Shown: positions 2,960 through 59,327 of the stretch, piece by piece
How positions within the stretch are numbered: position 1 is the first letter of the stretch
Layout of the letters: the number at the start of each line of letters is the position of its first letter
Assembly: GCA_011109175.1 (NCBI GenBank)
Contig: RDEW01000037.1
Coordinates: 189,891-253,890 of the forward strand
Reading direction: 5' to 3'
Source of the DNA: Dicyema japonicum
Lineage: Eukaryota; Animalia; Dicyemida
DNA: 64,000 nt
Translations under genes and position numbers: made by a program
Notes under the pieces: model-generated
The model's input: only the letters and a program-made list of their open reading frames with translations
Databases searched by the model: none
Told to the model about the DNA's origin: nothing

Positions 2960-5132
2960 ATGCAAGAAGGTAAATTGTGTTTGATGATTAAGCGTATTTT
3001 GAAGAAGTCCATTATATTAGTTGGAATCAGTACACAGTTCCAATAAAACACGGAGAATTCAGTAGATTGCCACTGGTTGTGAAAAAGTTCATTATGGATC
3101 ATGTTTTGCTCGATTGTGAATCTAATAGGTGGAAATATTCAAACCAAGGGCTATCTACATTTGTGATGGATCCATTAGGGAGGAAAAGGAAATCATAAAT
3201 AGACTTTTAAATCGTCGAATCATTACTAAAATGAAGCCTAAAAACTGGTGCAATTTATAGTTAATTTAGCTATTTGGCAAGGACTGATCCTGCTGATGTG
3301 GCTAGAGTTGAGGCTAAAACATTTATTGTCACCCCTGATAAATATGAGAGTGTTTCCCACTCGAGAGAAAATTCTAAGACAAAAATTGGACAGTGGATGT
3401 CCCCCGAACAGGCTGATAAGGAGTATGACAGCAGATGGCCAGGGTGTATGGTAGGTTAGATGTTCCTCTTACATTTTTACAAGGTCGTTTGATGTATGTG
3501 ATTCCATTTCTGATGGGTCCCATGGGAAGTCGATTTAGTAAAGTTGGAATACAGATCACAGACTCTGGATATGTGGTACTGAGCATGCACAAAATGACAC
3601 GCGTTGACAATCAAATTTGGGATATGGTGGAGGAGGACAACTTTGTAAAGTGCATTCACTCCACTGGTTGTCCCAGAACAAATGAAGCGAGTATTCTATA
3701 TTAAGTATTTCAGCATATTCAAAATATCCTTGGACTTGTAACCCAGGAAAAGTGCTTATTCTTCATTTTCCTCATGAATATAAAATTATGTCATTTGGGA
3801 GTGGATATGGAGGAAATTCACTTCTTGGAAAAAAGTGTTTCGCTCTAAGAATTGGGAGTTATATTGCCAAGAAGGAGGGATGGTTAGCAGAACACATGCT
3901 TGTTTGACTAACAATTAAATTGTAGATTTTGGGGATCACAAACCAAGACGGAAATGAGAAATTCATTGCTGCAGCTTTCCCTAGTGCCTGTGGGAAGACA
4001 AACATGGCAATGATGGAGTCAATTTTACCTGGAATGAAAATCCGTTGTATTGGTAATATGTGTTGACATTGTTTAGGGGACGACATTGCGTGGATGCGAT
4101 TCGATGAAACTGGACAACTTTATGCTATAAATCCTGAAAGTGGATTTTTTGGAGTAGCTCCTGGGACAAATTGGAAGACAAATAAATATGCGATGGAGAC
4201 GATAAAGGAGAATTCTATATTTACCAACGTGGCATTAACCAAAGACGGAATGCCTTATTGGGAGGGTCTTACAATAAATGACGTTTTATCACCTCCATAT
4301 TTGATAGGATGAAGTAATAACTGACTGGAAAGGAGAAAAGTGGTCTAAAAATACTTCTTCCACTCCAGCTGCTCATCCAAACTCCAGATTTACAGCACCT
4401 GCTAGTCAGTGTCCAGTCATTCACCCACGGTGGGAGGATCCGGAAGGAGTTCCTATAAGTGCTATTATTTTTGGAGGTCGTCGACCGAAAGGTAAGCGAG
4501 TTTTTATTACATAGGTATTCCTCTCGTTTATGAGGCCAACAGTTGGACTCATGGAGTCTTTGTTGGTTGCCAACTTAAATCCGAGACTACTTCGGCTGCA
4601 GAATTTAAGGGTTATATATGAACATACATTTATAGGCAAATCGATAATGCATGATCCAATGGCTATGAGACCATTTATGGGGTACAACTTTGGGGATTAC
4701 ATCAAACACTGGCTTAGTTTGGATAATGGGTTCAATAAGGTAGGAATATTACATTATAAAGATTCCTAAAATATATCACGTTAATTGGTTCAGGGTTGAT
4801 GAAAATAATAAATTTCTATGGCCTGGATTTTCTAATAACGCACGTGTATTGAAATGGATTTTGGACAGATTGGACGGAAAGGACATAGGAATGCCGAGTC
4901 CATTGGGATTGATGCCTATTAAGGGTTTATGATATAAATTAGTAAAGGAAGCATTGACACACTGGGACTGGATGTTGATTGGGATAAATTGATGCAACTT
5001 GATAAGGATGTCTTGCTTGATGACATTAATGAAACTATTGAATTCTTTGATCAAGTTCTTGGATGCGATCTTCCAGAATCCATTAAGAAAGAGGCTGAAG
5101 ATCAAAAATCAAGGATAATGTCAATGAATTAG
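2960..5132 (+). CDS. PCK: Phosphoenolpyruvate carboxykinase (GTP), 13 exons
   Basis: Removing 12 GT-AG introns (2970-2992, 3103-3128, 3248-3269, 3455-3483, 3691-3713, 3902-3925, 4053-4076, 4283-4307, 4492-4514, 4611-4635, 4740-4761, 4925-4947) gives one open frame with [85 protein letters not shown] and VNWFR. Start ATG at 2960 is the best candidate but unproven. Confidence 0.97.
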
Positions 5133-6998: not shown

Positions 6999-8343
6999 AT
7001 GGAACGTCAAAACAACCACAGGCATCACTCCGAGTCTTCACAGTCCTCATCCTTCACCTCTTCAACGTCTTCGTCGAATAGCGGGAGTAAAGTGAGGAAA
7101 GACGATGATGGGCATCTGCTCTACTGTGAAGGAGACATAATAAGCAACTGTGAGTTCAGAATTGAAAAGAATCCCTACAGATAAAATTGTCGGCCTTTTG
7201 GGGGAGGGTACCTTCGGAAAGGTCCTGGATTGTCGGGACCTGAACGAGTAATCTATAAACTTACCATTTAAGCGATGGACGTCATGTCGCCGTCAAAGTC
7301 GTCCGTTCCGTCGAAAAATACACTTCCGCTGCAAAGATAGAGATTGAAATCCTCAAGTACATCAGACGGAAAGATCCTAACTCGAAAAGGTCAGTTTCTT
7401 TATAATCTGACTTTATGTAGTCACTGTGTGGAGATCCTTGATTCATTCAAAGTTCTCAATCATCTGTGTATCGCGTTTCCTGTCTATGGATTGAGCGTTT
7501 TCGAGTTTATGGTAATCAGTTTTTCTATGTGTAGAAAAAAAACAACTACTTCCCGTACCCTATGCTCCAGGTTCAAGCGATATCCTACCAGCTTTGTGAA
7601 GCCGTGGCCTGTAGTTAAGTTCATGACCTAAAGTCCTTCACTCACGTGGGATGACCCACACGGATCTGAAACCTGAGAATTTGCTTTTCGTAGATTCTTC
7701 GTATGAAACGGTTTTTCGAGGAACAGAAAAACCATCAATTCGCGTTTTGAAATGTGCCGTGAAGCTGATTGACTTTGGTTCCGCTGTCTTTGAGAACGAC
7801 CATCACTCCAGGGTGGTCTGCACTCGGCATTACAGACCTCTGGAAGTTGTCCTAGGTTCTCGAAAGTGCTTACGGTAGAACTTCCATGGGACAATCTATG
7901 TGACGTGTGGAGTGTAGGTTGTATCATGTTTGAATTGTACACTGGACATACTTTGTTCCAGACCCACAGCAATCTTGAGCATTTGGCTATGATGGACAGA
8001 ATACTGGGACCTCTTCCTTACAGGCTTATTCGGAAGACAAAGTATTAGTGATGACTTAGTTGTAGGAAAACACAATATTTTTATCACGGAGAACTTGATT
8101 GGGATAGATATTCTGAGAGAGGGAGATATGTCAGGAATAACTGCTTTCCCCTTTTTGTATTAATTATGTTTAGTTTAGTCATACATTCACTCAAAGTCTC
8201 AAATACATGGAGATTTATTTGATTTGATTGACAGAATGCTAGACTACTACGTACACCATAGAATCACTATTTTCTCAGCTATGCGTCACTGTTTTTTTGA
8301 TGATATTGATAGAATACTCAGAATAACTAATTCTATTAGATGA
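6999..8343 (+). CDS. CLK: CLK/LAMMER dual-specificity kinase, 9 exons
   Basis: Eight introns (7150-7180, 7248-7272, 7390-7420, 7512-7534, 7611-7633, 7856-7878, 8042-8065, 8157-8178) give [58 protein letters not shown] and LDWD. Stop TGA at 8341-8343. Confidence 0.95.
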
Positions 8344-8366: not shown

Positions 8367-9773
8367 TCATTTTTTATTTAAAAGTCTTCTTTTTAGTTCT
8401 TTTCTAAGTAAGTCACGTTCCTGTTCTGTTCCGTTTAGAATAGACGAGTTTTCCGAAGCCCTTCTTGATAGGTATGGAAGGACGTCCATTAGATTACCAT
8501 AGGGGACACTCTTGTAGACGTTGTATCCGGTAATCCCCATTAGGAATGTTATATTGTCTGATAACCCATAGAGCTGTCCGAATGACACGTTTTTGTTAGT
8601 TGGTTCTATTTCTAGCTCCTCCATAAAGTCTATTACTTTGAGGATTGATTTTTCATTGTGAGTGGCGGCTATTACACTATACTTGTCAGTTTTTTTTGAT
8701 ATTCTAGTCAAAATATGGTGGATTGCCTTATCGTATATTTCTGATGTCCTTTCAAATGATTCATTTATTGGACTTTCCTTGTTATTTTTCTTAGCTGTCC
8801 TGTTTTCAGAATCCATGTAGGCTCCACGCACAATCTTTGAACCCCAGCACCGTCCGAACGAATCTAAGATCTTCATTTCTTCAAGAATAGAGTCAAATGC
8901 AGTCTTCAGATAACATTGGTGAGTATTCCATACCATTGGTTTTAGTATATTGTGCTTAATCATAAGGGCAACTGCAAATAGTTGTATTCCTCTGTTGATG
9001 ATCATGTATTCTGCATCCACCAGCAATCTCACTCCTTCGTTGATGGCATTATCTCCAAATTGTCTAAGACAGCCGACTGCATTGGTCAGAAAAAGTTGTT
9101 CACTTGGACTTAGAGTACTGAAAATAGTCTGTTCTATGCTTATATTGTCCTCTGACATTAATTTTGACAACTCAATTGCATACATGTTAAAGTTCTCCAA
9201 TGTACCCGTCCTTGTACCAAACTCTGCTAGTAAAGACTGTGGAGCAAACGCAGTCATTTTGAAATGAATCATTGGAACCACGTGAACACACAATTGACGA
9301 GCAATTTTGACACAATTTAAAGAATTTGCAAGATTTGTGAGTAATTTGTTGTGATATTTCCCATTTGTCATGTTGGCCAAATCTTCTTCAGAGGCTAGCA
9401 TTAATAGGATGCTGATTCCTGATTGGTTCAGTCTGAGAGATACTTTAGCAAGCTCTTCGTTGGTCTCTCCTCCAGCAAATTGTCCATATATCGTCGACTT
9501 GATCAAATACTTGAAGATTCGTTCTCCCAGAATAAATTTCCCAGCTTTCATGAGGAAAATGGCGTTCAATGAAATGAACCGAAATGAGCAAAGGTAAAGG
9601 ACCGAAAATGATCTAATAATTTCAACGTTGGACTTCATTTGTAGGGATTTTTCAATATCAGAAAAATTGGGCTTCACGAATTTTAAATCAACTTTTTTTA
9701 ATTTTTTCTGATATTCGACGACATTTTGGCTTCTTTTCCAAGGAATCAACGCATTTTCTTTAACAGAAGTCAC
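8367..9773 (-). CDS. PRODH2: Mitochondrial proline/hydroxyproline dehydrogenase (PRODH2-like), single uninterrupted ORF
   Basis: 468-aa ORF with YGQFAGGET, LLVDAEY, WNTHQCYL, KIVRGAYM, ATHNE, FGQLYG and YKSVPYG..PYLSRRASEN. The PRODH family call is firm; the PRODH2 subtype is inferred. Confidence 0.93.
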   Translation of the reverse strand: MTSVKENALIPWKRSQNVVEYQKKLKKVDLKFVKPNFSDIEKSLQMKSNVEIIRSFSVLYLCSFRFISLNAIFLMKAGKFILGERIFKYLIKSTIYGQFAGGETNEELAKVSLRLNQSGISILLMLASEEDLANMTNGKYHNKLLTNLANSLNCVKIARQLCVHVVPMIHFKMTAFAPQSLLAEFGTRTGTLENFNMYAIELSKLMSEDNISIEQTIFSTLSPSEQLFLTNAVGCLRQFGDNAINEGVRLLVDAEYMIINRGIQLFAVALMIKHNILKPMVWNTHQCYLKTAFDSILEEMKILDSFGRCWGSKIVRGAYMDSENRTAKKNNKESPINESFERTSEIYDKAIHHILTRISKKTDKYSVIAATHNEKSILKVIDFMEELEIEPTNKNVSFGQLYGLSDNITFLMGITGYNVYKSVPYGNLMDVLPYLSRRASENSSILNGTEQERDLLRKELKRRLLNKK

Positions 9774-28440: not shown

Positions 28441-31400
28441 GGATATCGGGTCCAACCTCAGGACGTGTCCAAAAAATCTCCAACGAGAGCTAATGATCTC
28501 GTGGCTTAATGGTATACAGTTATTGTACAGTCCATTCCGCGAGATCTTGGATGGCCAGGACATTCCAGTTATGTTTCTTAGATGATTCCTGTGAAATAAG
28601 TCTAGCCTTTCCAATTCCTCTTTAGAGGTGGCCCAGGTCCCAGAGTTGTAGAATTGGTTTGATGAAAGTGTTGTATAACATAATCCTTTGTTTTATGTTA
28701 TATCCTTTCCGTTTTAGCCAAAGATTTTTAAGCCTTTGTAATGCCGCATTTGCCAATGTTTTTCTCCGTATGATGTCTTCGCTATCTCCTAGTAGTGAGC
28801 CAAGTTTCTTTATGTGTCTCCATTATTCTTCGAGTGAGTTGTTCATTCGTCTTATCTCTGTCCGTTCTGTTTTTCCCTGTTCACGGTGACAAACCATTTT
28901 CCAAGTATATCTGGTGCTTTTTTCTCCAGGAGTTCTTTGTCTTCAGAAATTAAGTCGACATCATCAGCATAAATCACTTCTTCTATTTTTCCTTGATATA
29001 ATGGTCTCAGTTCCCTCATAGCGGCCTCCAAGTATATTGTGAATAGTAGGGGAGAAAGGGAGTTTCCTTGAGGAGTGCCTGTGTTTGTTTCAAATTTTCT
29101 TGAGTAGGTTTTTCCAACTCTCACAAGGAGCTCTGTGTTAGATAGAAGGATTTGAATCATTCTTAGACTCGATTCGTCAATAAACCCATCCAGCACTGTC
29201 ATCAATTTGTTCCTGTTAACCGAGTCAAAGGCTTTTGATAGATCTATTCCCAGAATGTGGATGGAATTGCAATATCTTTGATGTGTTGCACATCTCCATC
29301 TGTGACTCCAGACTGCATCAGCTGTTGATCTTCCTTCTCTGAACCCACTTTGACTTTCGGGTAGGTATTCATAAGCGGGTCCTTTTATTCGTTCCAATAC
29401 AATGTTAGCTAAGACTTTCCGTAGAGAATTTGATAATATGATTGGTCGTAAGTTTTCAACCGGTCCTTTGGGTTTATTGGGTTTTTGTATAGGTATTAGT
29501 AATCCCGTTCCCAGGGGCAAGGTTGAGTTAGTTGAAAACATTTCATTTAGTAGTGTAGCGATTTTTTCAAAAAGGGGGTCAGGCCCGTATTTCAGTAATT
29601 CTGGGTTTATCGTATCTGGTCCAGGGCTTCTGTTATTTTTTAATTTTTGACATGCTGTTTTTACTTCCAAAATTGAAATTGGTTCTTTTAAAGGTCTAGG
29701 CTTTCCTTTGAATGGGGGGATTGCTGTAGTCACATTAAAAAGTTTCTCAAAATGTGTTGCAATTACCTCCGCTTGCTCTTCAGTATTCAGTAATGTCTTG
29801 CCATTTTTGTCTTTGATGATTATTCGTTCCTTCCGGTTTGTGTGGCGTAGTAAACGAGCGGCCATATACATTTGTGAATTATTCTTTAGTTTGGATACTT
29901 CATTGATTTTGCGAAGAAGTTCTTCTTGGTGAAGTGTCTTGTTCAGTCTCCTGATTTTTCTACGGATTTGGTCACTCTGCCCTTGAAGGACTTTTCTCAT
30001 GTTATAGTCTTTTTCGATTAGTTTTTTTGTATGGATTTCCTTTAACTCCTTTGCTAATTCCTTTACTAGTTCTGTATGTGTCGTCAGACCCTTACTGGCC
30101 ATCTCCCGCGTGCCGAGGTACTGGCTTGCTGCTTCGTTTATTATATACTTCGTGTGATCCTACGAAATTCCTACTGTTTGGTCCTTCAGATAAGAGCAGA
30201 TGTGTTTTTGGTAACTTTTGACTGTGTCTGGATTTTTTTTTAAAATTTTTGGTGTATTTAATTAAAACAATAGAAGTCAGGTAGTTGCCGCCCTCACTGC
30301 GTGGCTGTTCCCTCTCAAAATTGCGAGCGAAATTCGCTCAAATAGCCAGCGGCGTTCACGGAGATCTCCAGTGCATGAGGTGATCCGGTTTCCAAGACGT
30401 CCGAAAAACTCGAGTGTAGAGGGGGAGTAGGATCCGGAAGTCTCCATAGCAAGGGGAACAAATTTGACATCATCGGGAAGGTCGACGTATTTAACGAGTT
30501 TGGCCTTCTCCGCCTTTACGGATGCTGAACAGGCCCTTGTAGCACTCTCGTGAAGATTTTTCTGGGCGAACGTGTCTGTACATGTCACATCCCAAACCAG
30601 TGGTTTCCCGGCCTCAAATGGAAATATGGTCATCCCGTCCGGTCGTTTCCCGTCACTTCTGCATAACCCGACCGGTTCAAGAATGGCCGAGTATCCAGCA
30701 GCATCCATAGCTCGCCTGACAATTTCATTCAGAGCCTTGTGCCTTGGGGATCTGCCAGCGCTCCTCCTGCAGGCGGAGGGTGCAGGCCATAGGAGTCTAT
30801 CAGGATGCCACATCGGCACGGGTGAGGTACACATACTTTTAGTCCCAGCCGCAGAGAGATATCAGTTCTAACGCATTCATCATCCAGAAAAGTGCCCAAA
30901 GCTCCATTGGGGAGATCAGTTTCCCGTTGCCTATGTGTCTGGATTAGAGATCAGTTTTTCCGTTGCGTATCCATTTCTTGTATTCTCAATATTATAGTTT
31001 GTAATGTTATTATGTTTCTTATGTTTGATGTTTCGCCAGGCTGAAGGTGACAATAACCATTCTGTGATCGCTGACAGTTGTTGAACCTTCGTATGAGCGT
31101 GCGTTAATAAGAGAGCATTTGTCATTGATCCGGCATATAATATAATCAATTTGGTTGTATATAGGGAATAATTTTCCTTCTGGGTTTCTTCGTTCGCCCA
31201 TCCAAGTAGTTATTTGGAATGCACGATGAGAGAATGCAGTGTTGCACAAGAACAGTTTGTTTGCCGTGCAGAAATGGCCAAGTATAGTCCCAGGCAAGTT
31301 TCTTTTCCCACGTCCATGTCTTCCCATGAAGATATCTTCTGAGTTCTTTTTTGTTCCGATTTTCGCATTCAGATCGCCAGCAATGAATATAAGTGAGGAC

Positions 31401-31860
31401 GACTCATATTCATTATACGTCTTTGATAATGCTGAGTAGAATTCATCCAGTTCGGTCGGGTTTTTTGCCACTCTTCCACAGTGTGGTGCATATACATTTA
31501 TAATCGTTAGTGTATTTTTAGGGGAACATTGATTGTTCAAGTGGATCTGTATTACGCAGATCCTGTCATTCACCCGCCAAATGCGACTGATGTCAGATGA
31601 TAGTTTTCTGTGAATGGCGAATCCAAGACCATAGTGTTTTGAGTCACTGGGTAGACATATTAGACGATATCTTCCGTGGTTTTCATCGAGATAGTACGTA
31701 ATTTTCGTCTCTTGTATACAGCCAATAAAAACGTTATATCTTTCTAGGTCATCACAGAGAGTATTTATTGACTGAGGCTTAGATATTCCTCTAGCATTGA
31801 ATGTAAGAAACTTTAGGGCAAGCATATTCTTTTGTATCTTCTGCTTTCTAGACATTTTCT
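28440..31860 (-). mobile_element. Near full-length RTE-clade LINE (APE endonuclease plus RT), interrupted and frameshifted
   Basis: APE at 31019..31855 (LTFNARG, IQETK, INVYAP, GDLNAKIG, IDYI, SDHR), RT at 28852..30102 (SPGPD, RPI, QSGFR, DLSKAFD, PQG, YADD), C-terminus to 28440. Confidence 0.93.
30235..30933 (-). mobile_element. 5'-truncated CRE-like element inserted into the RTE, with poly(A) and a 12-bp TSD
   Basis: RLE domain (CRRSAGRSPRHKALN, KRPDGMT, WDVTC, FVPLAMET, ERISLAILRGN). TSD tgtgtctggatt at 30223-30234 and 30934-30945; T-run at 30233-30241. Confidence 0.92.
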
Positions 31861-31944
31861 TATCCGTTGTACAGAGAAGAAACGAGGCACGTCACCACCT
31901 CACCAAAAAACGACCTCATGTCATCTAAAAATAAATATGAAATA

Positions 31945-34487: not shown

Positions 34488-36105
34488 TTTTCCGGAGTTC
34501 CCATTTTCTAGACGGAACCCCAAAATTTCAAAAACTTGTTATTGTAAAGATCAGTTTGGTAGCTGGAGTAATAAGTTTATTTATTTTGCTAAGTATGATA
34601 ACATTTTGGAACGCATCACCAGGAGTGGTACACATCTGTAGTCAATGCTTGAACAAAAAAAACGGTGGTTGTCTCCTTATGAAGTGGATGTTTATCTTTC
34701 TAGGTGAATTAGGTACCCTTTGGGCTTTAACAGAACTTACAGAGCTAGTGAACCGTTAAATGTCTCCTTAAATCTCTTATGCCTTTCTTTTATCATGGTA
34801 ATGATAGGACTATTGAGAAATGACTTAGTCTGAGGACTAACTTTATTTTATTTAGTGTAACCTATTCTGAAAAATTATTCTTGAAGTTCTTTCAATTTTA
34901 GGTCGAACGAGATCCACTTCTTTAATTTCGAGTTTTCGATGTTTCCTGAGTCTGTCGACTCAACACGCTCAAAAAATTACAAGGGTTTCCCTCCATAATG
35001 AAATTAAGTAGATATTTCATGCAATAGAGGTTCAACCTTTGAAACGTCATGTGATTAACCTCTAATTGGTGGAATTTGGACATTTCACTAATAAAATAGC
35101 AAACAGAATCACACTTTTCCTGTTGATCAAATGATGGATCAAAGAATAACCTTTGACCAATAATTGCAATTAGGTTGGAAAATATAACCTTACATATTCA
35201 TTTTAGTAAAGTTTCAACCAGATCATAAAATTTTAAAAGATCCGTGGTAATCTGGTTTATAGATTAAAGTTCATACAACACTTCATTAATAATTAAATTC
35301 TACAGTCGAGTCTATAACAATTATGTTCTGACCTAAATTTGCTAAAATGGAATAATGTCTTAATGCACTGAAGTAAATGATCCTTTACACCTAATGAGAC
35401 AGGTAGACTATATAACATTACTCTATTATAACGAGAGAAAAAAAGGAAGAAAAAAAAGAAGAGAAGCCTTCGACAAAGTAGCCAGTGTGGGGAATGAGCC
35501 CACGGAGATTTGTTAATAACATGACACCATGGTCTGTCCTCAATGCGAAATTAATAATTTTCATTACTGTGTTTATTTTTTATAAATGAAATTAACAAAA
35601 GATCACACATAGAGCACGTGCTTACTTTAAAAATAATTTACGCCCAACTTAAAACATGTGAAGCCAATAAGGACAAATTAACAATAAAACTAAACGATCT
35701 TGATGCTCCTCTAGCTAAACGCATATTATTATAAAGTTGCCAATTTCAATAACAACAACGTCCACTCTAAAAAGATTTATAGAGTTGTACGTTTCGATAT
35801 GAGCTTAAGTTTGACAGACAATTTTATTGATTAAAAATTATGTGGAATGTAATTTATGTTGATTGATTATTAAAAGTTGCCAAAAACCATTCCCACTAAA
35901 GTTTAATAAGATAACTAGAATATTCGAGAGATTAGATAATCATTAGTTCAAGAATTTATTAAAATGTAATTAAAATTATGTACTAGTTAATTATTCTGTA
36001 TTATTAAAAATTAATATTAAATCTTAATATAATTTTAACAGATTATTGCACGTTCATACGCTATCCGAATGGTTTATAAATTGATAATGCCGATAAATAT
36101 TTGAT

Positions 36106-39100
36106 ATGAGTGGTGGTTGATTCTGTTGGCTTATATTATAGATAGCGAGGACTTATTCGGAGATGAAATTGGAGAATACACAGGTTTTAATAATTAATGG
36201 AAATAGAAATTAACATAACCAATAATAAAATGACTAATTATCAGGAATCTGAGAATATTGAGCAAAAGGGTAATGGAGATGATTTAAAAAAGGTATTTAT
36301 AGCCACGAAATTACAACACAAGAACAAGATATTCATGATGAATCATTCGGTAAATAATTATATTTAAAAGTAGAACAACAAAATGATATCATAGAATATT
36401 TACAAAACAAGGAACCAGAGATAACTGTATTTGAAGAAACTAATGTATGTGGAGAATATTTACAATACAAGGAACCTGAGGTGACTGTATTAGAAGAAAC
36501 TAATGTATGTGGAGAATATTCACAATATTTGATCTTTGAAAGTGAGAGTGGAGGTAATTTAATTACTTATTAAAAGATTTTGTTGACCATCATGAAGAAA
36601 ATATGCAAGGAATGTTAGATATGAAAAGTTAGTCAATAATATTCTAATAGATTTAGCTGATTGTCTCACAGATAATATAGAACCTAGTGAACTAATTAAT
36701 ATTGATGACTTGGGTGATGGAGATGGTCAAAGTTGTGAAGTTGAGGAGACCGTTAAAACAGATATAGGAGGTTTTACGGATTTAACTTAATATTAGATGA
36801 GATTCAGGGTGATCAGTCAACACAATTATGTAGGCTTTTAAATTTAAGTGAAGTTTTGGAAGGCAAAGAAACAGAATTAACTGATAACCTATCTAATAAG
36901 GGATCAGACGAAAATGAGATTACATCTCACTTTGGAGACAAGACTGAGGGTATTCATAATACGTGATTACAGATTGTGGAGAAAGTCAAGAGTCAACTAA
37001 TATATTGTATGATAAAGATGTTGAGGAATGTAGTATTTCTAATCGATATTCATCAGAAGTGGAGACTCAATCCGATCATTCGAGTAAATTTAATAAATTT
37101 TTTTAAGAAAATGACGATAAAGATACGATTTTACCAGAAACGGGAAATATTCCTTCCCAAGAACCAGAAAAGCAGGGGGAGGAAGTAATACTAGAAAGTT
37201 TTAGTGCGGCCACTGAAGAATCTAAAATTGAAAAGTCAACTGGAGAGTGTTATTTGGTTTGTTTATTAAAAGACGAGGTTCAATGTCAAGATGTTATTCA
37301 AGAAAAGTCTTTCCAAAGTTGTGATCAATATATTTTGTAGATCTTTTAGAAAATGAGAATAATCTCGTGGATTCTGGTAACTCTAGTATATTAAAATAGT
37401 CCACAAAGATGACTCTGAAATAAATTCATTAAAATTGCCACCAGAATGTGAATCAAACAATAATCCAGGTATTTTAAATTATAAATAATTTGACGAATTG
37501 GAAGAAATTATTGAATTATCAGAAAAGAAAACGGAACATGTCCAACTTTGCGACCAATATGATTTTATTCAAGTTGGAGAGTGTCCAGAGGGAGAAACCG
37601 AATTTGTTACTGGTAATCTTTATAACTTAAGAAACTGAATCCCAACCAAATTATGAAAATATGCAAGAATGTGTTAACATTGAAAGTGTTCAGCTTGATA
37701 TGGTGGTCCCAGGTTTTTATTATTTTAATTGGATGTAGCGAAGGACGTACAAGTTAGAATAACAACCGATAACCAAGTGAACCTAGAAGAGTTATCTGAG
37801 AATTTGGTAGAACAAGATGGTCGTCTTCGGTTTAAACTTTAGATAAACCGAAAATCATAGTGGATGACGAATCCTGCCAAAGTGGAGAACGTAATCAATA
37901 TTTTTAATGATAGAACCCCTTCCTAAACTCGAATCTTCTTATCTTGAGGTGAATGTCGAACAGGAAGACAATATCTCTGGTTTTGGGCAATTTTAACTGG
38001 ATCTAGATTCTGTTCACGAGCCAATAAATCTCGAAGTAATCGTAAATGTAGAATCAAAACAATCTACTGAAATCTTGGAATTTGGTAAAGCAACGGAAGT
38101 TTCCGGTATTTACGATTAAAATATTTGAGGCGAAGGAGTACAAAGTCACTCAGATCCTCAGGTTTGTGTAAGCAAGGATACGTTCGGTAGTAAATTTGGT
38201 GATCCGCTAGTAATCTACGAGGAAAAGGGGAAATTTGGTATTCTATTTATTGTATAGTACAGATATTGCTGAATTCACGGAAAGCTCATTTTCTGAACAA
38301 AATAAAATTGAAAATTTCCAAAGTTTTAATTATTTATAACTATTAGGTGTTATAATGGAATACAACAAAGTCATGGGGTTAGAAAGTTCTCCTGATTTAA
38401 GGGAGTCATTGGAAAATATTGGTTTTTTGTGGAATAAGAATCCATAGTTGAACGTCCAGAAATAAGTACTGAAGAAGCCGTCGTTGATGGATTGCATAAA
38501 TTTGATGAAAGTCAGCAAAGTTTTTATTTTATTTAAAGAATCGGAAATAAACCAAGAACCTGCAGATGAGAAAGGTAACTGTTCCTTAATTTGTAGAACC
38601 TCCCACTGAAACTCTAAAAGAATATCAAGTCCTTTTAGAACCCCAGTTAGAAGCAAAAACTGAAATGCATTATTTCGAAGGGATTCCTGAGACCAATATT
38701 TCAGAGATAAATATTGAAACATCTCATGATCTCACCTGGAACAGTGATAGTTCTTCGTCCGGAGTTATCGATCCTTTAATTATGCAAGGTATTTTTGTAT
38801 GAAACCTTTTTAGAGACGATCTGTGGTGTCTCGGGAGAACTTCAAACTGGTTTGATTTAATTTTACTTTATTAGCTCGAAATGTGACCTTAGATTTCAAT
38901 AAAGTTAGAAAATATTTATTTTTAGCTTTCTTCATGTCGTTTGTTGATTGTGGGAACTAATAATTGTGGCAAGTCGTCCCTTATCACGGATATGGCAGAA
39001 TTTCCCGAATCTATGGAAAATTTCAAGGTGATTAGTCTAAATATTTTGAGTATGACTACGTCCCCTGTTCCTTCAAAGATTTCACGTTAGGGAAGATCAA

Positions 39101-39602
39101 ATTTAGTGCAATAGAAATACCAAGTTGTGGGTTAAATAATTTAGGTGATCAAAACTGTTATATTTCTAACTCATCCCTTTATAAAAATGCTGACGGGTAT
39201 ATAATATGTACGGACTCAATTACATCAGGATCTATGGAGATTGTTCATAAATTGAAGGAGGCTGTGGATGATAGATTATATAATGAGGATTCTTCCCCTA
39301 AGATAAGTCTTTTGATCATCACTAAAGTTGGGGTTGTATTTTATGTTTTAGTGTGATCAAATGAATATAAATTTCCCACAAAGTAAAGAGTTGGATGATT
39401 TTTGTGACCGAGAGGGGATAACATGCGGATGGATTCACACCTCCGTTAAAAGTGGACACAATGTGAAGAATGCCTTCTATCGAATCATTTCTGAGGTATC
39501 CTTATGTTTAGTTTTCAGTTGTTACAGACAAATGTCCTCGGTCGAGAATTCGCTGAAAGTATTATCTCAGAAAATTTACCAACGAAGGGAAAATGTTGTT
39601 AA
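36106..39602 (+). CDS. Giant Rab32/38-like GTPase with a ~700-aa acidic low-complexity N-terminal arm, about 32 micro-introns
   Basis: Manual splicing gives a continuous E/D/N/S-rich frame running into GTNNCGKSS, YKNADG, TKCDQ, LDDFCDREGITCGWIHTSVKSGHNV and a C-terminal CC prenylation motif (stop TAA 39600-39602). Start codon and a few acceptors are uncertain. Confidence 0.8.
36394..36528 (+). repeat. 60-nt coding tandem repeat (about 2.25 units, EYLQNKEPEITVFEETNVCG)
   Basis: Units begin at 36394, 36454 and 36514 and differ by several substitutions. Confidence 0.9.
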
Positions 39603-39829
39603 GTTTCATTACTTTATTCAGTTATTTCATTTATTCACTAACAAAATATATTATTATGAATAATTACTGAACACAATTTTTATTAAAGTTTCACCTTCTG
39701 TGGAGGGGTTGCTCAGTTTACTTTGGTCATCCCAGCATATATAGTCAATATAAATGGACTTTTGTAATATAAGTCCATACTCATTTGTGATCTAAATAAT
39801 ATTTATACCAATGAAAATCATTCAACACA

Positions 39830-52896: not shown

Positions 52897-53180
52897 GTTC
52901 TTGTCTAAATATTTCAATTTTCATGGTTTATTTGCTTAATTAATAAATTTCTCAGTCTTAAATTCTATAATTTAAGATAAATTTTAATAATAAATTTTAA
53001 TAATTAATATCAATTTCGTGACAAAAAACATGCAATTTTAGGTGTAAATATTGAATTATGTTAGCGACTTTTTTCAATCGTGTTGCTAAGCAAATCAATT
53101 ATATATCATTATACATCACTATTCTCAGATTGTGTCAAATACTCGATGTACTCGGGTTTTATTATTTTTTCAGAGAATAC

Positions 53181-55445
53181 ATGGAATCTTTGGATGATCT
53201 TCACATATATTTATGGCCAAAGTGTCTTTGGAGGATTTACGAAAGAACTGGACTTGCCGAATCCATACCTGGATTGATCTCCCTTGGTTTTATTAGGTAA
53301 ATAATTTAACTAATTTTGTAAAGGACACGAACTAGTTTTACTCTGCAAAAGATCAGGGAGGAAATCACAAATCAATTGGGTCCTGACTTTCCAAAAAAAT
53401 ACTATTTTCTGAGACAAGTTGGTAGGAAAGTTGCTATTGTATTTATGTGAATATATTTGTAGATAAGGCAGAGACAAGAAATTGGGATTTTTGCAAGTGA
53501 TTTTCTTCCACCAAACGCATCGTCTCCTGATTTATTTGTTATAGAAAATGATACAATTGAAATCAACTCCCATTCCAATTCAACGTCTATTAATGTCTTT
53601 TTGAATTTACAAAATTAGGATCCCTTTAATGAGAAGATGAGCATCATAACTGGAGACTTGTCATCTAAACAAGTCGAGAAATCACTATCTATTTCTCACG
53701 ATAAAACTAAAGACGAAGATCAGGGGAAATCCGATATCCAATCATTTAAGAAAACTCAAAAAATGAAGAAAGTTGTCAATTCAAAAAAGCTAAGTTCTGA
53801 ATTAGAAAACCCGTTTAATGAATCTCTGGAAGAAAATGGTGAAACAAAGCTTATAAACGCATCAAAGAAAAAAATAGTTGTAAAAAACAACTACAACAGG
53901 AGAAAATCAAATGATAAAAAAAAGATGCAGAACTTTTACATCCAAACTGATGAGACCGGAACCGATTCCGAAAAGCAGAGAAATAAAGGTGTTTTAAGTT
54001 CCAAGGGATCTTCAGTTGATTCAATTAGTTGTGAATCCAATAACTTTTCGAATGTTCAATTTAATGTAATAAATTTACAGAAACCGAATTTAACAAAGGA
54101 GAGATTTAAAGAAAACTTAGAAGAAGACATGGTATTCTAGACATTCTAACGATATTAGATCTTTCCCCCTTTAGTTACCACTTTTTCCGGAAAACGGGAG
54201 TCAGACAAAAAAGTACTGATATATTAAAATATTAAGAAATCAAGGAAAATGAGAAAACTTGGTTTAATGGTAGGTAATTCTAAGATATCCCTGAAATTAT
54301 TGAGAGTCAGTTGGATACTTTTAACGAACTAAACGATTCTGAATTTTTTCCAAAAAATATCAAAAATTTAGGTGAATCTGATGATTTATTATTTCCGTCC
54401 GAGAGGATCAACTATCCTATAAGGCGAAGGGGAAAAACAAACAAGCATAAGAAAAAAGTAAAAAAATTATCCAAAAACAATTTTAATGATGATAAAGAGT
54501 AAAAAATATTTTTAATGGTTAAAAGTTTAGAAATCTCAGACAATAGGCGTAGAAAGCACTTTAACCCAAACCATAACAGAATTAATTCTTCTGATGACGT
54601 TCGAAATGGACAAAGAAGGTTATCTAAAGAAGATCAACAGCAAAAACACAATCAATTGGAGCAGATTAAACAACTTGAAAAAGAGATGGATAAGGCTCAG
54701 CAGGATCTACTAAATCCATCAGAAATCGTAATTTTAGAGGATTTTAATGTCGACTTTTCTCAAAGCAGGTTGTTCAATTTCTTTAGATTAGTGAGGAAAA
54801 AAAAGTTGATATCACAAAAATTGAGAGAGAAATGACCGTCAAACTAAAGTCCCTTCTAAATGAAGTGCACAAATTGGATAATGAAAGAAATTATCTCATT
54901 CGACAACTTGAAAGCTTGGATAACGAAAACAAATCAAGTTACTAGTTTGTAACTATAAAATAGAAAAAAATGACTGGAAATATAAATATTTTGCTGAGAG
55001 GAAGCTTACAAAGGAACTTCAAGTGGATTCATCCAAAAATGAACAAGTGTTAAATAATATATACAAAAATAAACTTCGATATATTCCTCCAACTCAGCCA
55101 GTTGTGCCCAAGAACACACGAATGAGGCCTGGGAGTAATGTAAGGTCATTTTCTATTGATAGGCAAATTTGCTGATAATGAAAACCAAACTGGAATTGGT
55201 GATTGAAAAACTAAAAAGAGAAGAGGAATCTCTCAAAACTCGATTATTTATAGAGATGAAAGTTTTTCAATTTTTTATTTAAGATTAAAAATCACGAAAA
55301 AGAACGGGCAGGCAAGAATAGAAATATTTTGCGACAATACAGACATGAAGCGACCGATCATAGAAATAGATATGGTAAAATATTGGCTGACAGTTCAAAA
55401 TCACGGAATCAGTCAGATTTTACATTCCCAAAATTGAATAAATAG
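53181..55445 (+). CDS. SPATA1: SPATA1-like protein (spermatogenesis-associated 1)
   Basis: N-terminal LHIYLWPK..SLGFIR..FTLQKIREEI..YYFLRQVGRK..RQEI..FLPPNASSPDLFVI and C-terminal RMRP..LIMKTKLELVIEKLKR..RLFIEMK match the two SPATA1 blocks from memory. Micro-introns present. An upstream start at 53058 is possible. Confidence 0.75.
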
Positions 55446-56058
55446 GGTCTTTGCTCAATAATTATTTATTGCATTACAGAAACAATAAAGTTTGTCAATT
55501 AAACATTAACAAAGCAATCTTCACTTTTATATTTACAATACGTTAACAAAATCAAGTAACCACAAAAATAATTCAGTTTTAATCAATTAGAAATATCATT
55601 ACGACCGTAACATTTCCTAATGATGATCACAACGATAAGTAAAATTGATCCCAGGATAGGAAAAAGTGCCATTTCGATATCTCTTCTAGAGGAGAAAGGA
55701 AACATATATAATTAAAATGGATTAGTTCCTTATTTTTAGACCCACCATGTATAGCATCCCAATTTGTCAATATATTTCACATTTCCTAAAATTACCTAAT
55801 AATTGATTTATAATAAAAATTGAATAAAATTAATTACTTATGAATTAATTAAAATACTTGAACTGTAGCTAAACATAATCATTATTATTTAAAATAATAA
55901 ATTCCTTCAGATAATATGAAATCTTTGAAAACAATTATATAAATTATAAATAATTATATGAATATAAATTAATATCAATCAAAAATTATAATTTCGTAAC
56001 TGGTAAACCACCTTACAAATAAAAAATCGCATTCCCGTTTCGTAATTTTCTTGTGGTG

Positions 56059-59000
56059 ATGTCAAATAATCGAGGTTACAGTGGAGGTGCCTATAGAGGA
56101 AACAATAGAGGTGACGTAATAGTTGATTAACTAATTTAGGTGGTTATAATAGACCTCATAACAATCAGAGGGATAATTATCGTGATGATAGGAACCGTAG
56201 AGATAATCGGGGCGGTGATTACGATGACAGATCCCATAGGAATCAACGGGGAAATTATTACGACGACAGACCATACAGGAATCGTGATAATGACAGACCT
56301 TATGCGGACAATGGAACCCGCTATGATGACCGCAGACGGCCTGATTCTAGACATGGAAACGATAGAACTCAGGAACGAAACTTTGAGAGACGTGGTTATA
56401 ATGAAGGAAGAGGAAGGCGAGATGATAGGACCAACTATCAAGATAGACGCGGAGGTGATAGAGAGAAATGTTCTCAATTCAAAGACACAGTTAAGGAAAG
56501 TGCCACATCAATTTTTACTGAATTGGATTATGGTCCTGAAATTATGATGACTACCGTATTTATTAATGCTGATTTGTTAGAATGAGATTAGATTGGAAAA
56601 TGCTGTTGTTCAGTATTTCACAAAACTAAAAGAGCTTGATGATGCAAAGAAAAAAATCAAAAGATACGAAAGAGCCAACAAGGCTATGATTCTTCCCCCT
56701 TTTGCTTCTGGACCTCATGTTGGAGATTCGGGCTCTACTGTCACTTTAAAATCAAATTTTTTCCAAATAACAGACACTACAAACAGGTGGCGAATTCACG
56801 TGTACAATGTTAAATTTGAAAATCCTGACTATGATAAAAACAATGAAGTTCCTGCAAACGAAAGACATGCAATTCTCAGTAAATATTTCAAATCAGTGTT
56901 TGACAATAATTACATATTTGATGGAAAAGAAACAATATATTCTACTAAAGAAATTAGAGTATTTAATAATTTTATTTGCAGGATAACATTGTCATTAATT
57001 GTGAAAATTCTGGCAAACTATTTGAAGTAACAATGATCTACACAAAATGTTCATCCTCCAATGAACTCCCTGCTCTTCAGGCAATGAATATCCTTATGAA
57101 ACGTGTTTATCATATACTGGAAATGAAACCACTTGGAAGATCTTTTTTCGATACTGCGTCAGATGCTAGAAGAAGAATCACTAAAGAGTTGATAAATTGG
57201 TTTTAACTTTAAGGGTAGACGCTCTAGTGGCCGTGAGAAGTAGTATATCCTACTACGAGGACTCTAGTCTTTTATATTTGTTGGATATTCATTATAAGTT
57301 TGAACAAACTGAAACTGTTAATCGTGTTATAAATCAAATGAGACAAGATCAGGTAGACGAAGAGTTCATGAAAGAGAATTTAATTGGGAGGACTGTAAGG
57401 ACAGAGTAGGTTTATTATTAATATAATAGATATAATAATTTAACATATACCATATGTGATGTTGATTTTAATAAGACCCCACGTTCCACGTTTACTATAA
57501 AGGATAGAGAAATCTCATTTGCTCAATATGTTGAAAGATACGGATGTACAATCACTGATATGAATCAGCCATTGTTGGTGGTTAAGAACAAAAAAAAGGG
57601 TGATGGATACGATGATAAAATTTATCTGATTCCTGGATTATGTAGACTTACAGGTATTATTATTCACCGATTTGTAGGACTCCCTAGACAAATGTTGGAG
57701 AACCTTAATGCCGCAAGAGATGCAGCTAGGTTGACAAAGGCGGTCCCCACTTTAAGAGTGAAAACTCTAGAAAGTTTCAGAAAACGTTTTGACAAAAATG
57801 ATAAAATTAATGACGAATTTAAAAAATTGGGACTTAAAATAGGAACTAACCTGCTTGATGTGAGAGGAAGAGTTCTTGATTCTCCCTCTATAATGTTTAA
57901 TGATTGGCGTGACGATGTATTATTTTATATTATTTAGGTGCCATGTAGACCTAATGAAATGTTTGGGAAATACATTTTTAATAAGAGGATATTAACAAGT
58001 CCAGCTGCCAATGTAGAGATAGTGATATTGTGTCACATTCGTACAGAAAACTTAGCCAAGAATATTTCATCAGAAATATATTACGGTCTTAAAACGATTG
58101 GTGGAATAAGAAATGTAAATATTCAAATGTAAGTGTTTTGTATATTGTAGTCAACCACTACATGATGATTCTGCCCAATCATATTGTAATGAAATACAAA
58201 AAATTGCTAATAATTGTTCACTTATTGTTTGTGTTCTGTCAAATAATGTAGCGAAACGATACAATGCTATAAAAATTCAGTCATCGTTAGTAAATCCAGG
58301 TTCTCTGATTTTTAATATTTAGTTCCAACTCAAGTCATGATAGAAAGAACATTTTTGAATGCAAAAAATTTGAGGACTCTTGTGTTTAAAGTTATTCCCC
58401 AAATTGTTGCTAAATTAGGTGGAGAACCATGGGGATGTAAAATAACACCATCAGTAAGTCATTAGTTGTAGTTTAGCTGAGAAAATCGAGTATGTATGTT
58501 GGCATTGATACGTATCATGATGCACAGAGAAAAGAATTATCAGCTGCAGCCTTTGTGGCCAGTTTGAATGGAAATTGTACTCGAATGTTTAGTAGAGTGA
58601 GTTATCAATTGAGATCACTTGAATTACATGTTAATATGCGTCCAAACGTTGCAGGTTTTTATTATGTTATTGGTAGAGGCGTGTATTCACTGGTATAGAG
58701 CAAACAGTAATAAATTCCCTAAACATCTGTTCTTCTTTAGGGATGGTGTTGGTGATGGGCAGCTTGAAGAGGCTGTTACTCTTGAGATTGAACAGATTAC
58801 TCATGGAATACAGGATGCTAAAGAAATATTATCACTTCCAGCAGATACAATGTTATTTATTATTAATATTTTAGGTGTACTGTTACATTTATTGTTGTTA
58901 AAAAGAGAATATCTGCGAGGTTTTATTTGGATCAGGGTAATGGAGACTATGCGAATCCACTGCCAGGAACAGTAGTTGACACTAGGGTCACAAGAAATGA

Positions 59001-59327
59001 CTGGTTATTTTTATATTCATTTATAGGTTTGATTTTTATTTGATATCTCATATGCCTAAAGAGGGTACTGTTAATCCTGTTCATTATAATGTTATTTATG
59101 ACACACTAAAAGTTAATCCCGACGATATTCAAATGCTTGCATATAGATTATCATGGTTATACTACAACTACACTGTAATCATTATGTTATTATTTTAGGG
59201 ATCTATTAGTATTCCCTCTGTCTGTGGTTATGCTCATAAATTGGCTTATTTATCTGGTCTTAATTTGTCAACTGCACAAGTGTCCTCAAATAGACCTGAA
59301 TTATCCGAACAACTTTTCTATCTTTAG
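56059..59327 (+). CDS. PIWI: Piwi-clade Argonaute
   Basis: Spliced frame with an N domain ([19 protein letters not shown]), PAZ ([22 protein letters not shown]), MID ([20 protein letters not shown]), PIWI ([36 protein letters not shown]) and C-terminal LFYL*. Confidence 0.96.

Follow-up and report, generated by a model that had tools for sequence, protein, structure and literature searches.

The window analyzed here is a 64,000-nucleotide (nt) stretch of the Dicyema japonicum genome (assembly GCA_011109175.1, contig RDEW01000037.1, positions 189,891 to 253,890 of the forward strand). At its positions 36106 to 39602 lies a gene predicted to encode a protein of 917 amino acids (aa), in which a long acidic arm precedes a C-terminal GTPase domain that appears to be a strongly derived member of the Rab32/38 type. 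The coding region is interrupted by 31 predicted introns, the first 27 of which all split a codon after its first base (phase 1). An earlier reading of this DNA, made from the sequence alone, had noted an open frame, a phase-locked arm, and a Rab part; this observation is real and lies beyond chance. All junctions of the gene given below are predictions from sequence statistics.

A run of phase-1 micro-introns

When positions 36000-39700 are translated in three frames, coding-looking stretches switch frame each 40-190 nt. We used a forced shortest-path search, in which one open frame was allowed GT-AG introns of 15-40 nt, and this search was solved by a frame running from ATG at 36106 to TAA at 39602 on the + strand, reproducing the single frame claimed by the sequence-only reading after removal of micro-introns. 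We also used a Viterbi gene finder that combines codon log-odds with an intron model (length, four intronic bases per end, and interior composition). The intron model contains neither exonic bases nor a phase term, and the gene finder was trained on the window minus 35900-39800. It joined 36406-39602 into a single gene, whose 27 introns begin with an unbroken series of 23 in phase 1 and end with the four phase-0 introns at or in the GTPase part that had been described before. Scored with the gene finder, the best forced path through 36106-38903 has 27 introns, every one of them phase 1. The final model (Table 1) comprises 32 exons and 31 introns of 19-36 nt (median, 23), ordered as 27 of phase 1 and then 4 of phase 0. 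The run of about 28 phase-1 units reported earlier holds as a run, while the count becomes 27 phase-1 introns, two of which are optional.

Controls for the gene model came out clean. The longest coding sequence (CDS) predicted in 40 dinucleotide shuffles of the region was ≤315 nt, versus 2547 nt in the real sequence; the gene finder predicted no CDS on the antisense strand of the region; and the forced search had zero solutions in the antisense arm and in 30 shuffles. We regard the gene finder as credible because it reads through conserved genes of the window (PEPCK, a protein kinase, and an Argonaute/Piwi-type gene) correctly, with introns of 19-36 nt in mixed phases. We rejected an alternative genetic code in which the tiny introns would be read as in-frame codons: most of the introns shift the frame, and the conserved genes read with the standard code.

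For most arm introns, the next-best path either uses a phase-1 site slid by a multiple of 3 or does not exist, and a phase-0 or phase-2 alternative is available for five introns at a cost of 2.5-8.3 nats. An adversarial search that penalized phase 1 (introns of 19-30 nt) brought the phase-1 count down to 14-15 by way of poorly scoring introns, and it returned no solution with zero phase-1 introns. Retention of an intron would bring in an in-frame stop for 21 of the 27 arm introns and for none of the four GTPase introns, which would only shift the frame.

Background phase frequencies were taken from 60 predicted introns elsewhere in this one window, where phases 0, 1, and 2 occur 26, 14, and 20 times, respectively. 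Tested against them, the arm has a strong phase-1 excess (Fisher P = 1.5e-12; 0.23^27 = 9e-18). Introns are dense in the arm as well: there are 12.6 per kb of CDS, compared with 6.6 in the GTPase part and 5.1-5.6 in the Argonaute and PEPCK genes. Elsewhere in the window, positions 53116-55445 (+) carry two predicted Ser/Lys/Asn-rich low-complexity proteins with few introns, mixed phases, and no Pfam match; the phase-1 design is therefore not universal among disordered proteins here.

An acidic arm and a Rab32/38-type domain

The acidic arm of some 700 aa that had been proposed to share one frame with the Rab part comes to 716 aa, with no stop between the two. Its 26 internal exons measure 33-192 nt, are all multiples of 3, and are all bounded by phase-1 introns on both sides (1-1). 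The arm is rich in Glu (17%) and Asp (8%) and poor in Arg (0.7%), with basic residues making up only 6% and a net charge of −133, and its acidity is even along its length (9-15 acidic residues per block of 50). We found no hydrophobic segment or signal peptide in the spliced protein (maximum 19-residue hydropathy, 0.82; acidic N terminus). A PS00018 scan of the spliced protein and a Pfam scan of the ten longest arm exons were both empty, in agreement with the earlier remark that the arm lacks an EF-hand, and a search for look-alikes of the longest arm exon found none.

Several observations link the C-terminal part to the Rab32/Rab38 subfamily (Rab supergroup III, regulators of lysosome-related organelles), as the sequence-only reading had proposed. 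Among solved structures, exon 31 matches Rab32 first (E = 0.019, residues 128-168), then Rab38 and Rab7L1. At the level of the Ras superfamily, searching single exons with Pfam PF00071 gave collinear, sub-threshold matches in exon 29 (profile positions 1-20) and exon 31 (profile positions 128-158), with E ~0.17 each, and the look-alikes that a language model gave for exon 30 (0.91) and exon 31 (0.90) are fragments from the Ras family. In the alignment of exon 31 to Rab32, G4 (TKCDQ) and G5 (SVK) match the [NT]KxD + Q and SAK pattern. Gene structure points the same way. Rab32/38 genes have two ancestral introns, one of phase 1 between WDIA and GQERF and one of phase 0 between LLANK and CDQ (PMC4728774, Additional file 5). 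The phase-0 intron at 39327-39351, between LLIITK and CDQ, has the ancestral place and phase, which it shares with the Rab32/38 genes of Lottia, amphioxus, Ciona, and human; the phase-1 intron within switch II is not present, the exon at 39051-39326 being continuous there. Over the 33 residues before the K/CDQ intron, an ungapped alignment to the Rab32/38 proteins of Lottia and human has 8-9 identities (BLOSUM62 score 33-38 versus −27 ± 12 when shuffled; z ~5). This alignment covers the long loop before G4 that is characteristic of the subfamily, which has the same length here, and the protein ends in the Cys-Cys pair that had been read as its prenylation site.

Other parts of the domain have departed from the subfamily pattern, a point that the sequence-only reading overlooked. 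The P-loop, GTNNCGKS, keeps the general motif and differs from the subfamily form GE/GDxxxGKT (PMC4728774). The Rab32/38 consensus further comprises switch I FSxxYxxTIGVD, a FALK stretch, and switch II DIAGxERFGxMTR (PMC4728774). In the Dicyema protein, switch I reads Y-V-P-C-S-F-K-D-F, so that the conserved Thr has become Cys and the Gly has become Phe; FTLG replaces the FALK stretch that follows; and EIPSCGLNNLGDQ stands at the position of switch II, with DIAGxERF reading EIPSCGLN. The inter-switch hairpin is also ~8 residues shorter than in Rab32/38 proteins, and the 716-residue N-terminal arm is a further difference. Degeneration of switch I, FALK, and switch II makes a normally cycling Rab32 unlikely. 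Its motifs lead us to class the C-terminal domain as a strongly derived Rab32/38 type, one that probably binds guanine nucleotide and is prenylated but would lack a normal switch.

Contigs of four sequencing runs (X1-X4) cover the gene gaplessly and are ~1% different from the window; because they pass through all of the introns, they represent genomic DNA. The strain comparison consists of listed differences, about 30 in number, classified on the gene model. Arm exons carry 4 synonymous and 20 nonsynonymous changes on 353 and 1438 sites, respectively, giving a ratio of nonsynonymous to synonymous rates (dN/dS, or omega) of ~1.2; omega ≤0.3 is rejected for the arm (P = 0.004). Arm introns carry 5 changes in 556 nt. 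In the GTPase part, we counted 1 synonymous and 0 nonsynonymous changes in 603 nt (Fisher P = 0.01 versus the arm exons). None of the listed differences is an indel within the gene, and none falls at any GT or AG. The arm frame is thus kept while its residues change freely, and the GTPase domain is under purifying selection.

Exon 5 contains an in-frame tandem repeat with a 60-nt unit. Genomic runs X1, X2, and X4 cover this repeat ~50× more deeply than the sequence on either side, and contigs are broken at it. The depth suggests either a unit present in about 100 copies at other places in the genome or an array that the assembly has collapsed, in which case the arm would be much longer than modeled. 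There is no further copy of the unit within the window. Coverage by X5, a small run of guessed type, is confined to the exon-5 repeat and, nearly to the base, exon 10 (36977-37083). In two short X5 contigs the match ends at 37083, immediately ahead of intron 10, and 7 unplaced letters follow; such ends would fit spliced complementary DNA.

Table 1. Predicted features of the gene, in window coordinates
Feature	Position	Strand	Remarks
Whole predicted gene	36106..39602	+	917 codons plus TAA; forced search, gene finder, shuffle and antisense controls
Start codon	36106..36108	+	In-frame TAA upstream at 36094-36096, with no AG acceptor between (sequence)
Arm-coding part	36106..38903	+	28 exons; 716 aa
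Intron 1	36116..36141	+	Phase 1, 26 nt; donor possibly 3 or 6 nt upstream, phase unchanged
Intron 2	36184..36206	+	Phase 1, 23 nt; no alternative path
Intron 3	36270..36292	+	Phase 1, 23 nt; no alternative path
Intron 4	36350..36370	+	Phase 1, 21 nt (or 24 nt, acceptor 36373)
In-frame 60-nt tandem repeat, exon 5	36393..36527	+	2.2 copies, 92% alike
Intron 5	36554..36576	+	Phase 1, 23 nt
Intron 6	36628..36650	+	Phase 1, 23 nt
Intron 7	36771..36796	+	Phase 1, 26 nt
Intron 8	36830..36853	+	Phase 1, 24 nt; optional (3n, no in-frame stop), may be exonic
Intron 9	36950..36972	+	Phase 1, 23 nt
Intron 10	37084..37107	+	Phase 1, 24 nt
Intron 11	37249..37272	+	Phase 1, 24 nt; optional (3n, no in-frame stop), may be exonic
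Intron 12	37318..37340	+	Phase 1, 23 nt
Intron 13	37377..37399	+	Phase 1, 23 nt; phase-0 alternative 37367-37386 at a cost of 2.5 nats
Intron 14	37469..37504	+	Phase 1, 36 nt; no alternative path
Intron 15	37613..37631	+	Phase 1, 19 nt
Intron 16	37713..37738	+	Phase 1, 26 nt
Intron 17	37820..37842	+	Phase 1, 23 nt
Intron 18	37891..37913	+	Phase 1, 23 nt
Intron 19	37980..38006	+	Phase 1, 27 nt
Intron 20	38106..38129	+	Phase 1, 24 nt
Intron 21	38238..38262	+	Phase 1, 25 nt
Intron 22	38323..38346	+	Phase 1, 24 nt; no alternative path
Intron 23	38422..38447	+	Phase 1, 26 nt
Intron 24	38520..38538	+	Phase 1, 19 nt
Intron 25	38575..38596	+	Phase 1, 22 nt
Intron 26	38789..38813	+	Phase 1, 25 nt; directly after the arm's last in-frame Met, a possible internal start
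Intron 27	38850..38874	+	Phase 1, 25 nt; ends the phase-1 run
Phase-converting exon, 29 nt	38875..38903	+	Phase 1 to phase 0 at the arm-GTPase border
Intron 28	38904..38925	+	Phase 0, 22 nt
P-loop GTNNCGKS	38953..38976	+	GxxxxGK[ST] kept; comparison with consensus
Intron 29	39028..39050	+	Phase 0, 23 nt; adjoins degenerate switch I on its 5' side
Switch II remnant EIPSC	39114..39128	+	Stands where DIAGQ is expected; comparison with consensus
Intron 30	39327..39351	+	Phase 0, 25 nt; splits K and CDQ of G4; ancestral Rab32/38 intron position and phase
G5 motif SVK (SAK in Rab32)	39442..39450	+	In exon 31, whose best solved match is Rab32
Intron 31	39496..39518	+	Phase 0, 23 nt
C-terminal Cys-Cys plus TAA	39594..39602	+	Rab-type prenylation motif; protein ends KGKCC

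Function and origin of the same-phase exons

We give somewhat better than even chances to the reading that the gene encodes a giant lipid-anchored, switch-degenerate Rab32/38-type protein whose neutral acidic arm grew from same-phase exon units. The GTPase domain, with its predicted guanine nucleotide binding and geranylgeranylation, would not engage in canonical Rab32 cycling or effector contact, and would act mainly as a membrane anchor from which the long, negatively charged, disordered arm reaches into the cytosol. Bulk properties (length and charge) rather than sequence may be what matters in the arm, in keeping with its neutral change between strains under a frame that stays open. The phase-1 run could then be the footprint of a genome that builds lineage-specific disordered segments: in-frame growth would proceed by units of one exon plus one micro-intron, with descendant introns inheriting their phase, and the pattern would persist since a single intron cannot change phase without breaking the frame. 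Mis-splicing that joins one same-phase exon to another would leave the frame intact, along with the lipid-anchored Rab at the C terminus, and selection for such in-frame errors ahead of the C-terminal domain might plausibly maintain the pattern. The sequence-only reading had also tied the protein to lysosome-related or secretory organelles, which in a myxozoan would be capsules; this organelle link is pure inference, and its capsule part falls away with a dicyemid host.

Several results weigh against this account. Smith-Waterman comparison of arm exons with one another gave a top score of 36 (shuffles, 36.4 ± 4.5) and a mean of 16.3 (shuffles, 15.9 ± 0.26), and the junction flanks and introns are, by identity, no more alike than controls. 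An exhaustive, profile-free search of the 92-aa exon 30 against 1.84 billion representatives returned no homolog and no annotated or assembled protein containing it. In addition, a stand-alone Rab could arise from an in-frame Met that lies 29 residues ahead of the first GTPase strand, and a dN/dS of ~1 would also fit a functionless arm. The sole match of the exon-30 search (P0001) is an unrelated repeat protein, which we rejected, and neither the whole exon nor its last 51 residues had a relevant match in PDB.

Duplication of arm exon units, which the sequence-only reading had invoked, has accordingly left no detectable similarity in exon peptides, flanks, or introns; nor do the exon lengths share a common unit, and apart from the 60-nt repeat in its fifth exon, the arm shows only a few short DNA matches that are probably due to chance. 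Genes for disordered proteins tend to have same-phase symmetric exons, often by way of internal tandem duplication (PMC3632108). Duplication of exon-plus-intron units is the origin that we prefer for the run, although it is not demonstrated. We prefer it because neutral divergence would erase similarity between exons, because in-frame tandem duplication is active in exon 5, and because tandem-duplicated same-phase exons are the rule in disordered-protein genes (PMC3632108).

The internal Met and the neutral arm are also what one would expect if arm and Rab were separate, with translation from an internal start (Met near 38782) or transcription from an internal promoter giving a short Rab, or with the arm being a separate or functionless upstream frame. 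The conservation of the GTPase part beside an arm with dN/dS of ~1 suits such a division, as does the switch of phase regime exactly at the arm-GTPase border. Still, there is no stop between arm and GTPase, the first GTPase exon lacks its own start, the 29-nt phase-converting exon makes sense only if the two are read together, and unless read-through is selected for, an open frame of 716 codons cannot last across 27 introns; on balance we consider this separation unlikely. We would put at a similarly low level the idea, advanced by the sequence-only reading, that the same-phase exons serve regulated exon skipping, so that a single Rab anchor would carry arms in a series of lengths. Because the 26 internal exons of the arm are all multiples of 3 and in one phase, the frame survives any skip, and the micro-exon genes (MEGs) of schistosomes employ symmetric exons in this way. 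However, the introns measure 19-36 nt and have minimal signals, which implies that splice sites are recognized across them; an exon skip would need an "intron" of 80-240 nt, far beyond the narrow length range seen here; and neutral change of the arm argues against its exons being distinct functional modules. A more specific form of this idea, slightly less probable again, is a splice-programmable spacer: donors and acceptors would be paired across whole same-phase exons, and graded arm lengths on a switch-dead Rab32 derivative would set distance or charge at an organelle surface.

A run of one phase might instead be a by-product of composition, if G-A splice contexts (G at −1, A at +1) fall after the first codon base in a Glu/Asp-rich frame. 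G is indeed at −1 in 18 and A at +1 in 17 of 26 arm junctions, and 76% of the G-A sites in the arm CDS are in phase 1. Conditioned on its own exonic flanks, an arm intron has a mean phase-1 probability of 0.5-0.6, but the joint probability for all 27 still comes to 1e-8 to 1e-9, owing to some ten junctions in whose contexts phase 1 is in the minority. Glu/Asp-rich codon composition accounts for about half of each intron's bias and not for the run, and we judge it improbable as the whole explanation. Far less credible still is that the gene model is an artifact of forcing an open frame through AT-rich noncoding DNA. Candidate GT..AG pairs are common in AT-rich sequence, and the adversarial search does find other, worse paths; yet neither the shuffles nor the antisense strand gave a forced path, shuffled CDSs remained short, a forced artifact would show mixed phases, and the C-terminal exons match Ras/Rab at collinear positions.

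Related designs and genome context

The gene joins two known designs, the large Rabs and the same-phase exon arrays of disordered proteins. Like Rab44, Rab45/RASEF, and Rab46/CRACR2A (PMC8303950, PMC7645795), its product has a long N-terminal extension and a C-terminal Rab domain; unlike them, it has an acidic low-complexity arm with neither EF-hand nor Pfam match, and its Rab domain is of the Rab32/38 type. As in MAP2 (1-1 exons) and the SIBLING/enamel genes, in which tandem duplication is the usual origin of the exon run, a series of same-phase symmetric exons codes for a disordered, partly acidic region (PMC3632108). In contrast to those genes, the Dicyema gene has introns of only 19-36 nt at twice the density of its neighbors, a run of 27, and no similarity left between exons. 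The PEVK region of titin is a further disordered region encoded by same-phase symmetric exons. Schistosome MEGs (10.1101/2023.06.21.545858, PMC4015677) likewise have symmetric, frame-keeping exons and encode lineage-specific, fast-evolving parasite proteins, but MEG products are secreted and their genes combine exons of 3-81 nt with long introns, whereas here there is no signal peptide, exons measure 33-192 nt, introns are tiny, and the product is a predicted lipid-anchored cytosolic GTPase.

Introns shorter than 30 nt are on record for myxobolid myxozoans and Dicyema japonicum alone (PMC13644364). The window has ~35% GC and contains N gaps. Each of three conserved genes on the + strand, PEPCK (3129-5132), a CLK-like protein kinase (7144-8343), and the Argonaute/Piwi-type gene (56050-59327), has 7-15 micro-introns of mixed phase; the Argonaute/Piwi-type model begins with an odd Ile/Thr/Gly/Met-rich low-complexity N terminus. 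Two regions on the − strand are intronless: a proline dehydrogenase open reading frame (ORF) at 8370-9659 (PF01619, E = 2e-47), in an otherwise intron-dense genome, and a retroelement resembling long interspersed nuclear elements at 28855-31891, in a stretch of higher GC, with reverse transcriptase (PF00078, E = 2e-26) and endonuclease/exonuclease/phosphatase (PF03372) domains.

Standard ORF and gene tracks overlook large genes in micro-intron genomes. If transcripts confirm the model, the arm would contain one of the longest same-phase intron runs in a nonrepetitive coding region, in a genome with the shortest animal introns known. It would offer a test case for the origin of intron phase patterns, whether by duplication, composition, or selection for in-frame splicing errors, and for whether a spliceosome tuned to ~23 nt can skip exons; should the splice-programmable spacer be true, exon skipping would be regulated where each tiny intron is thought to be recognized on its own. 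The gene would also raise the question of what use a cell makes of a switch-less Rab32-type GTPase whose nucleotide pocket and lipid anchor are attached to a 716-residue polyanion.

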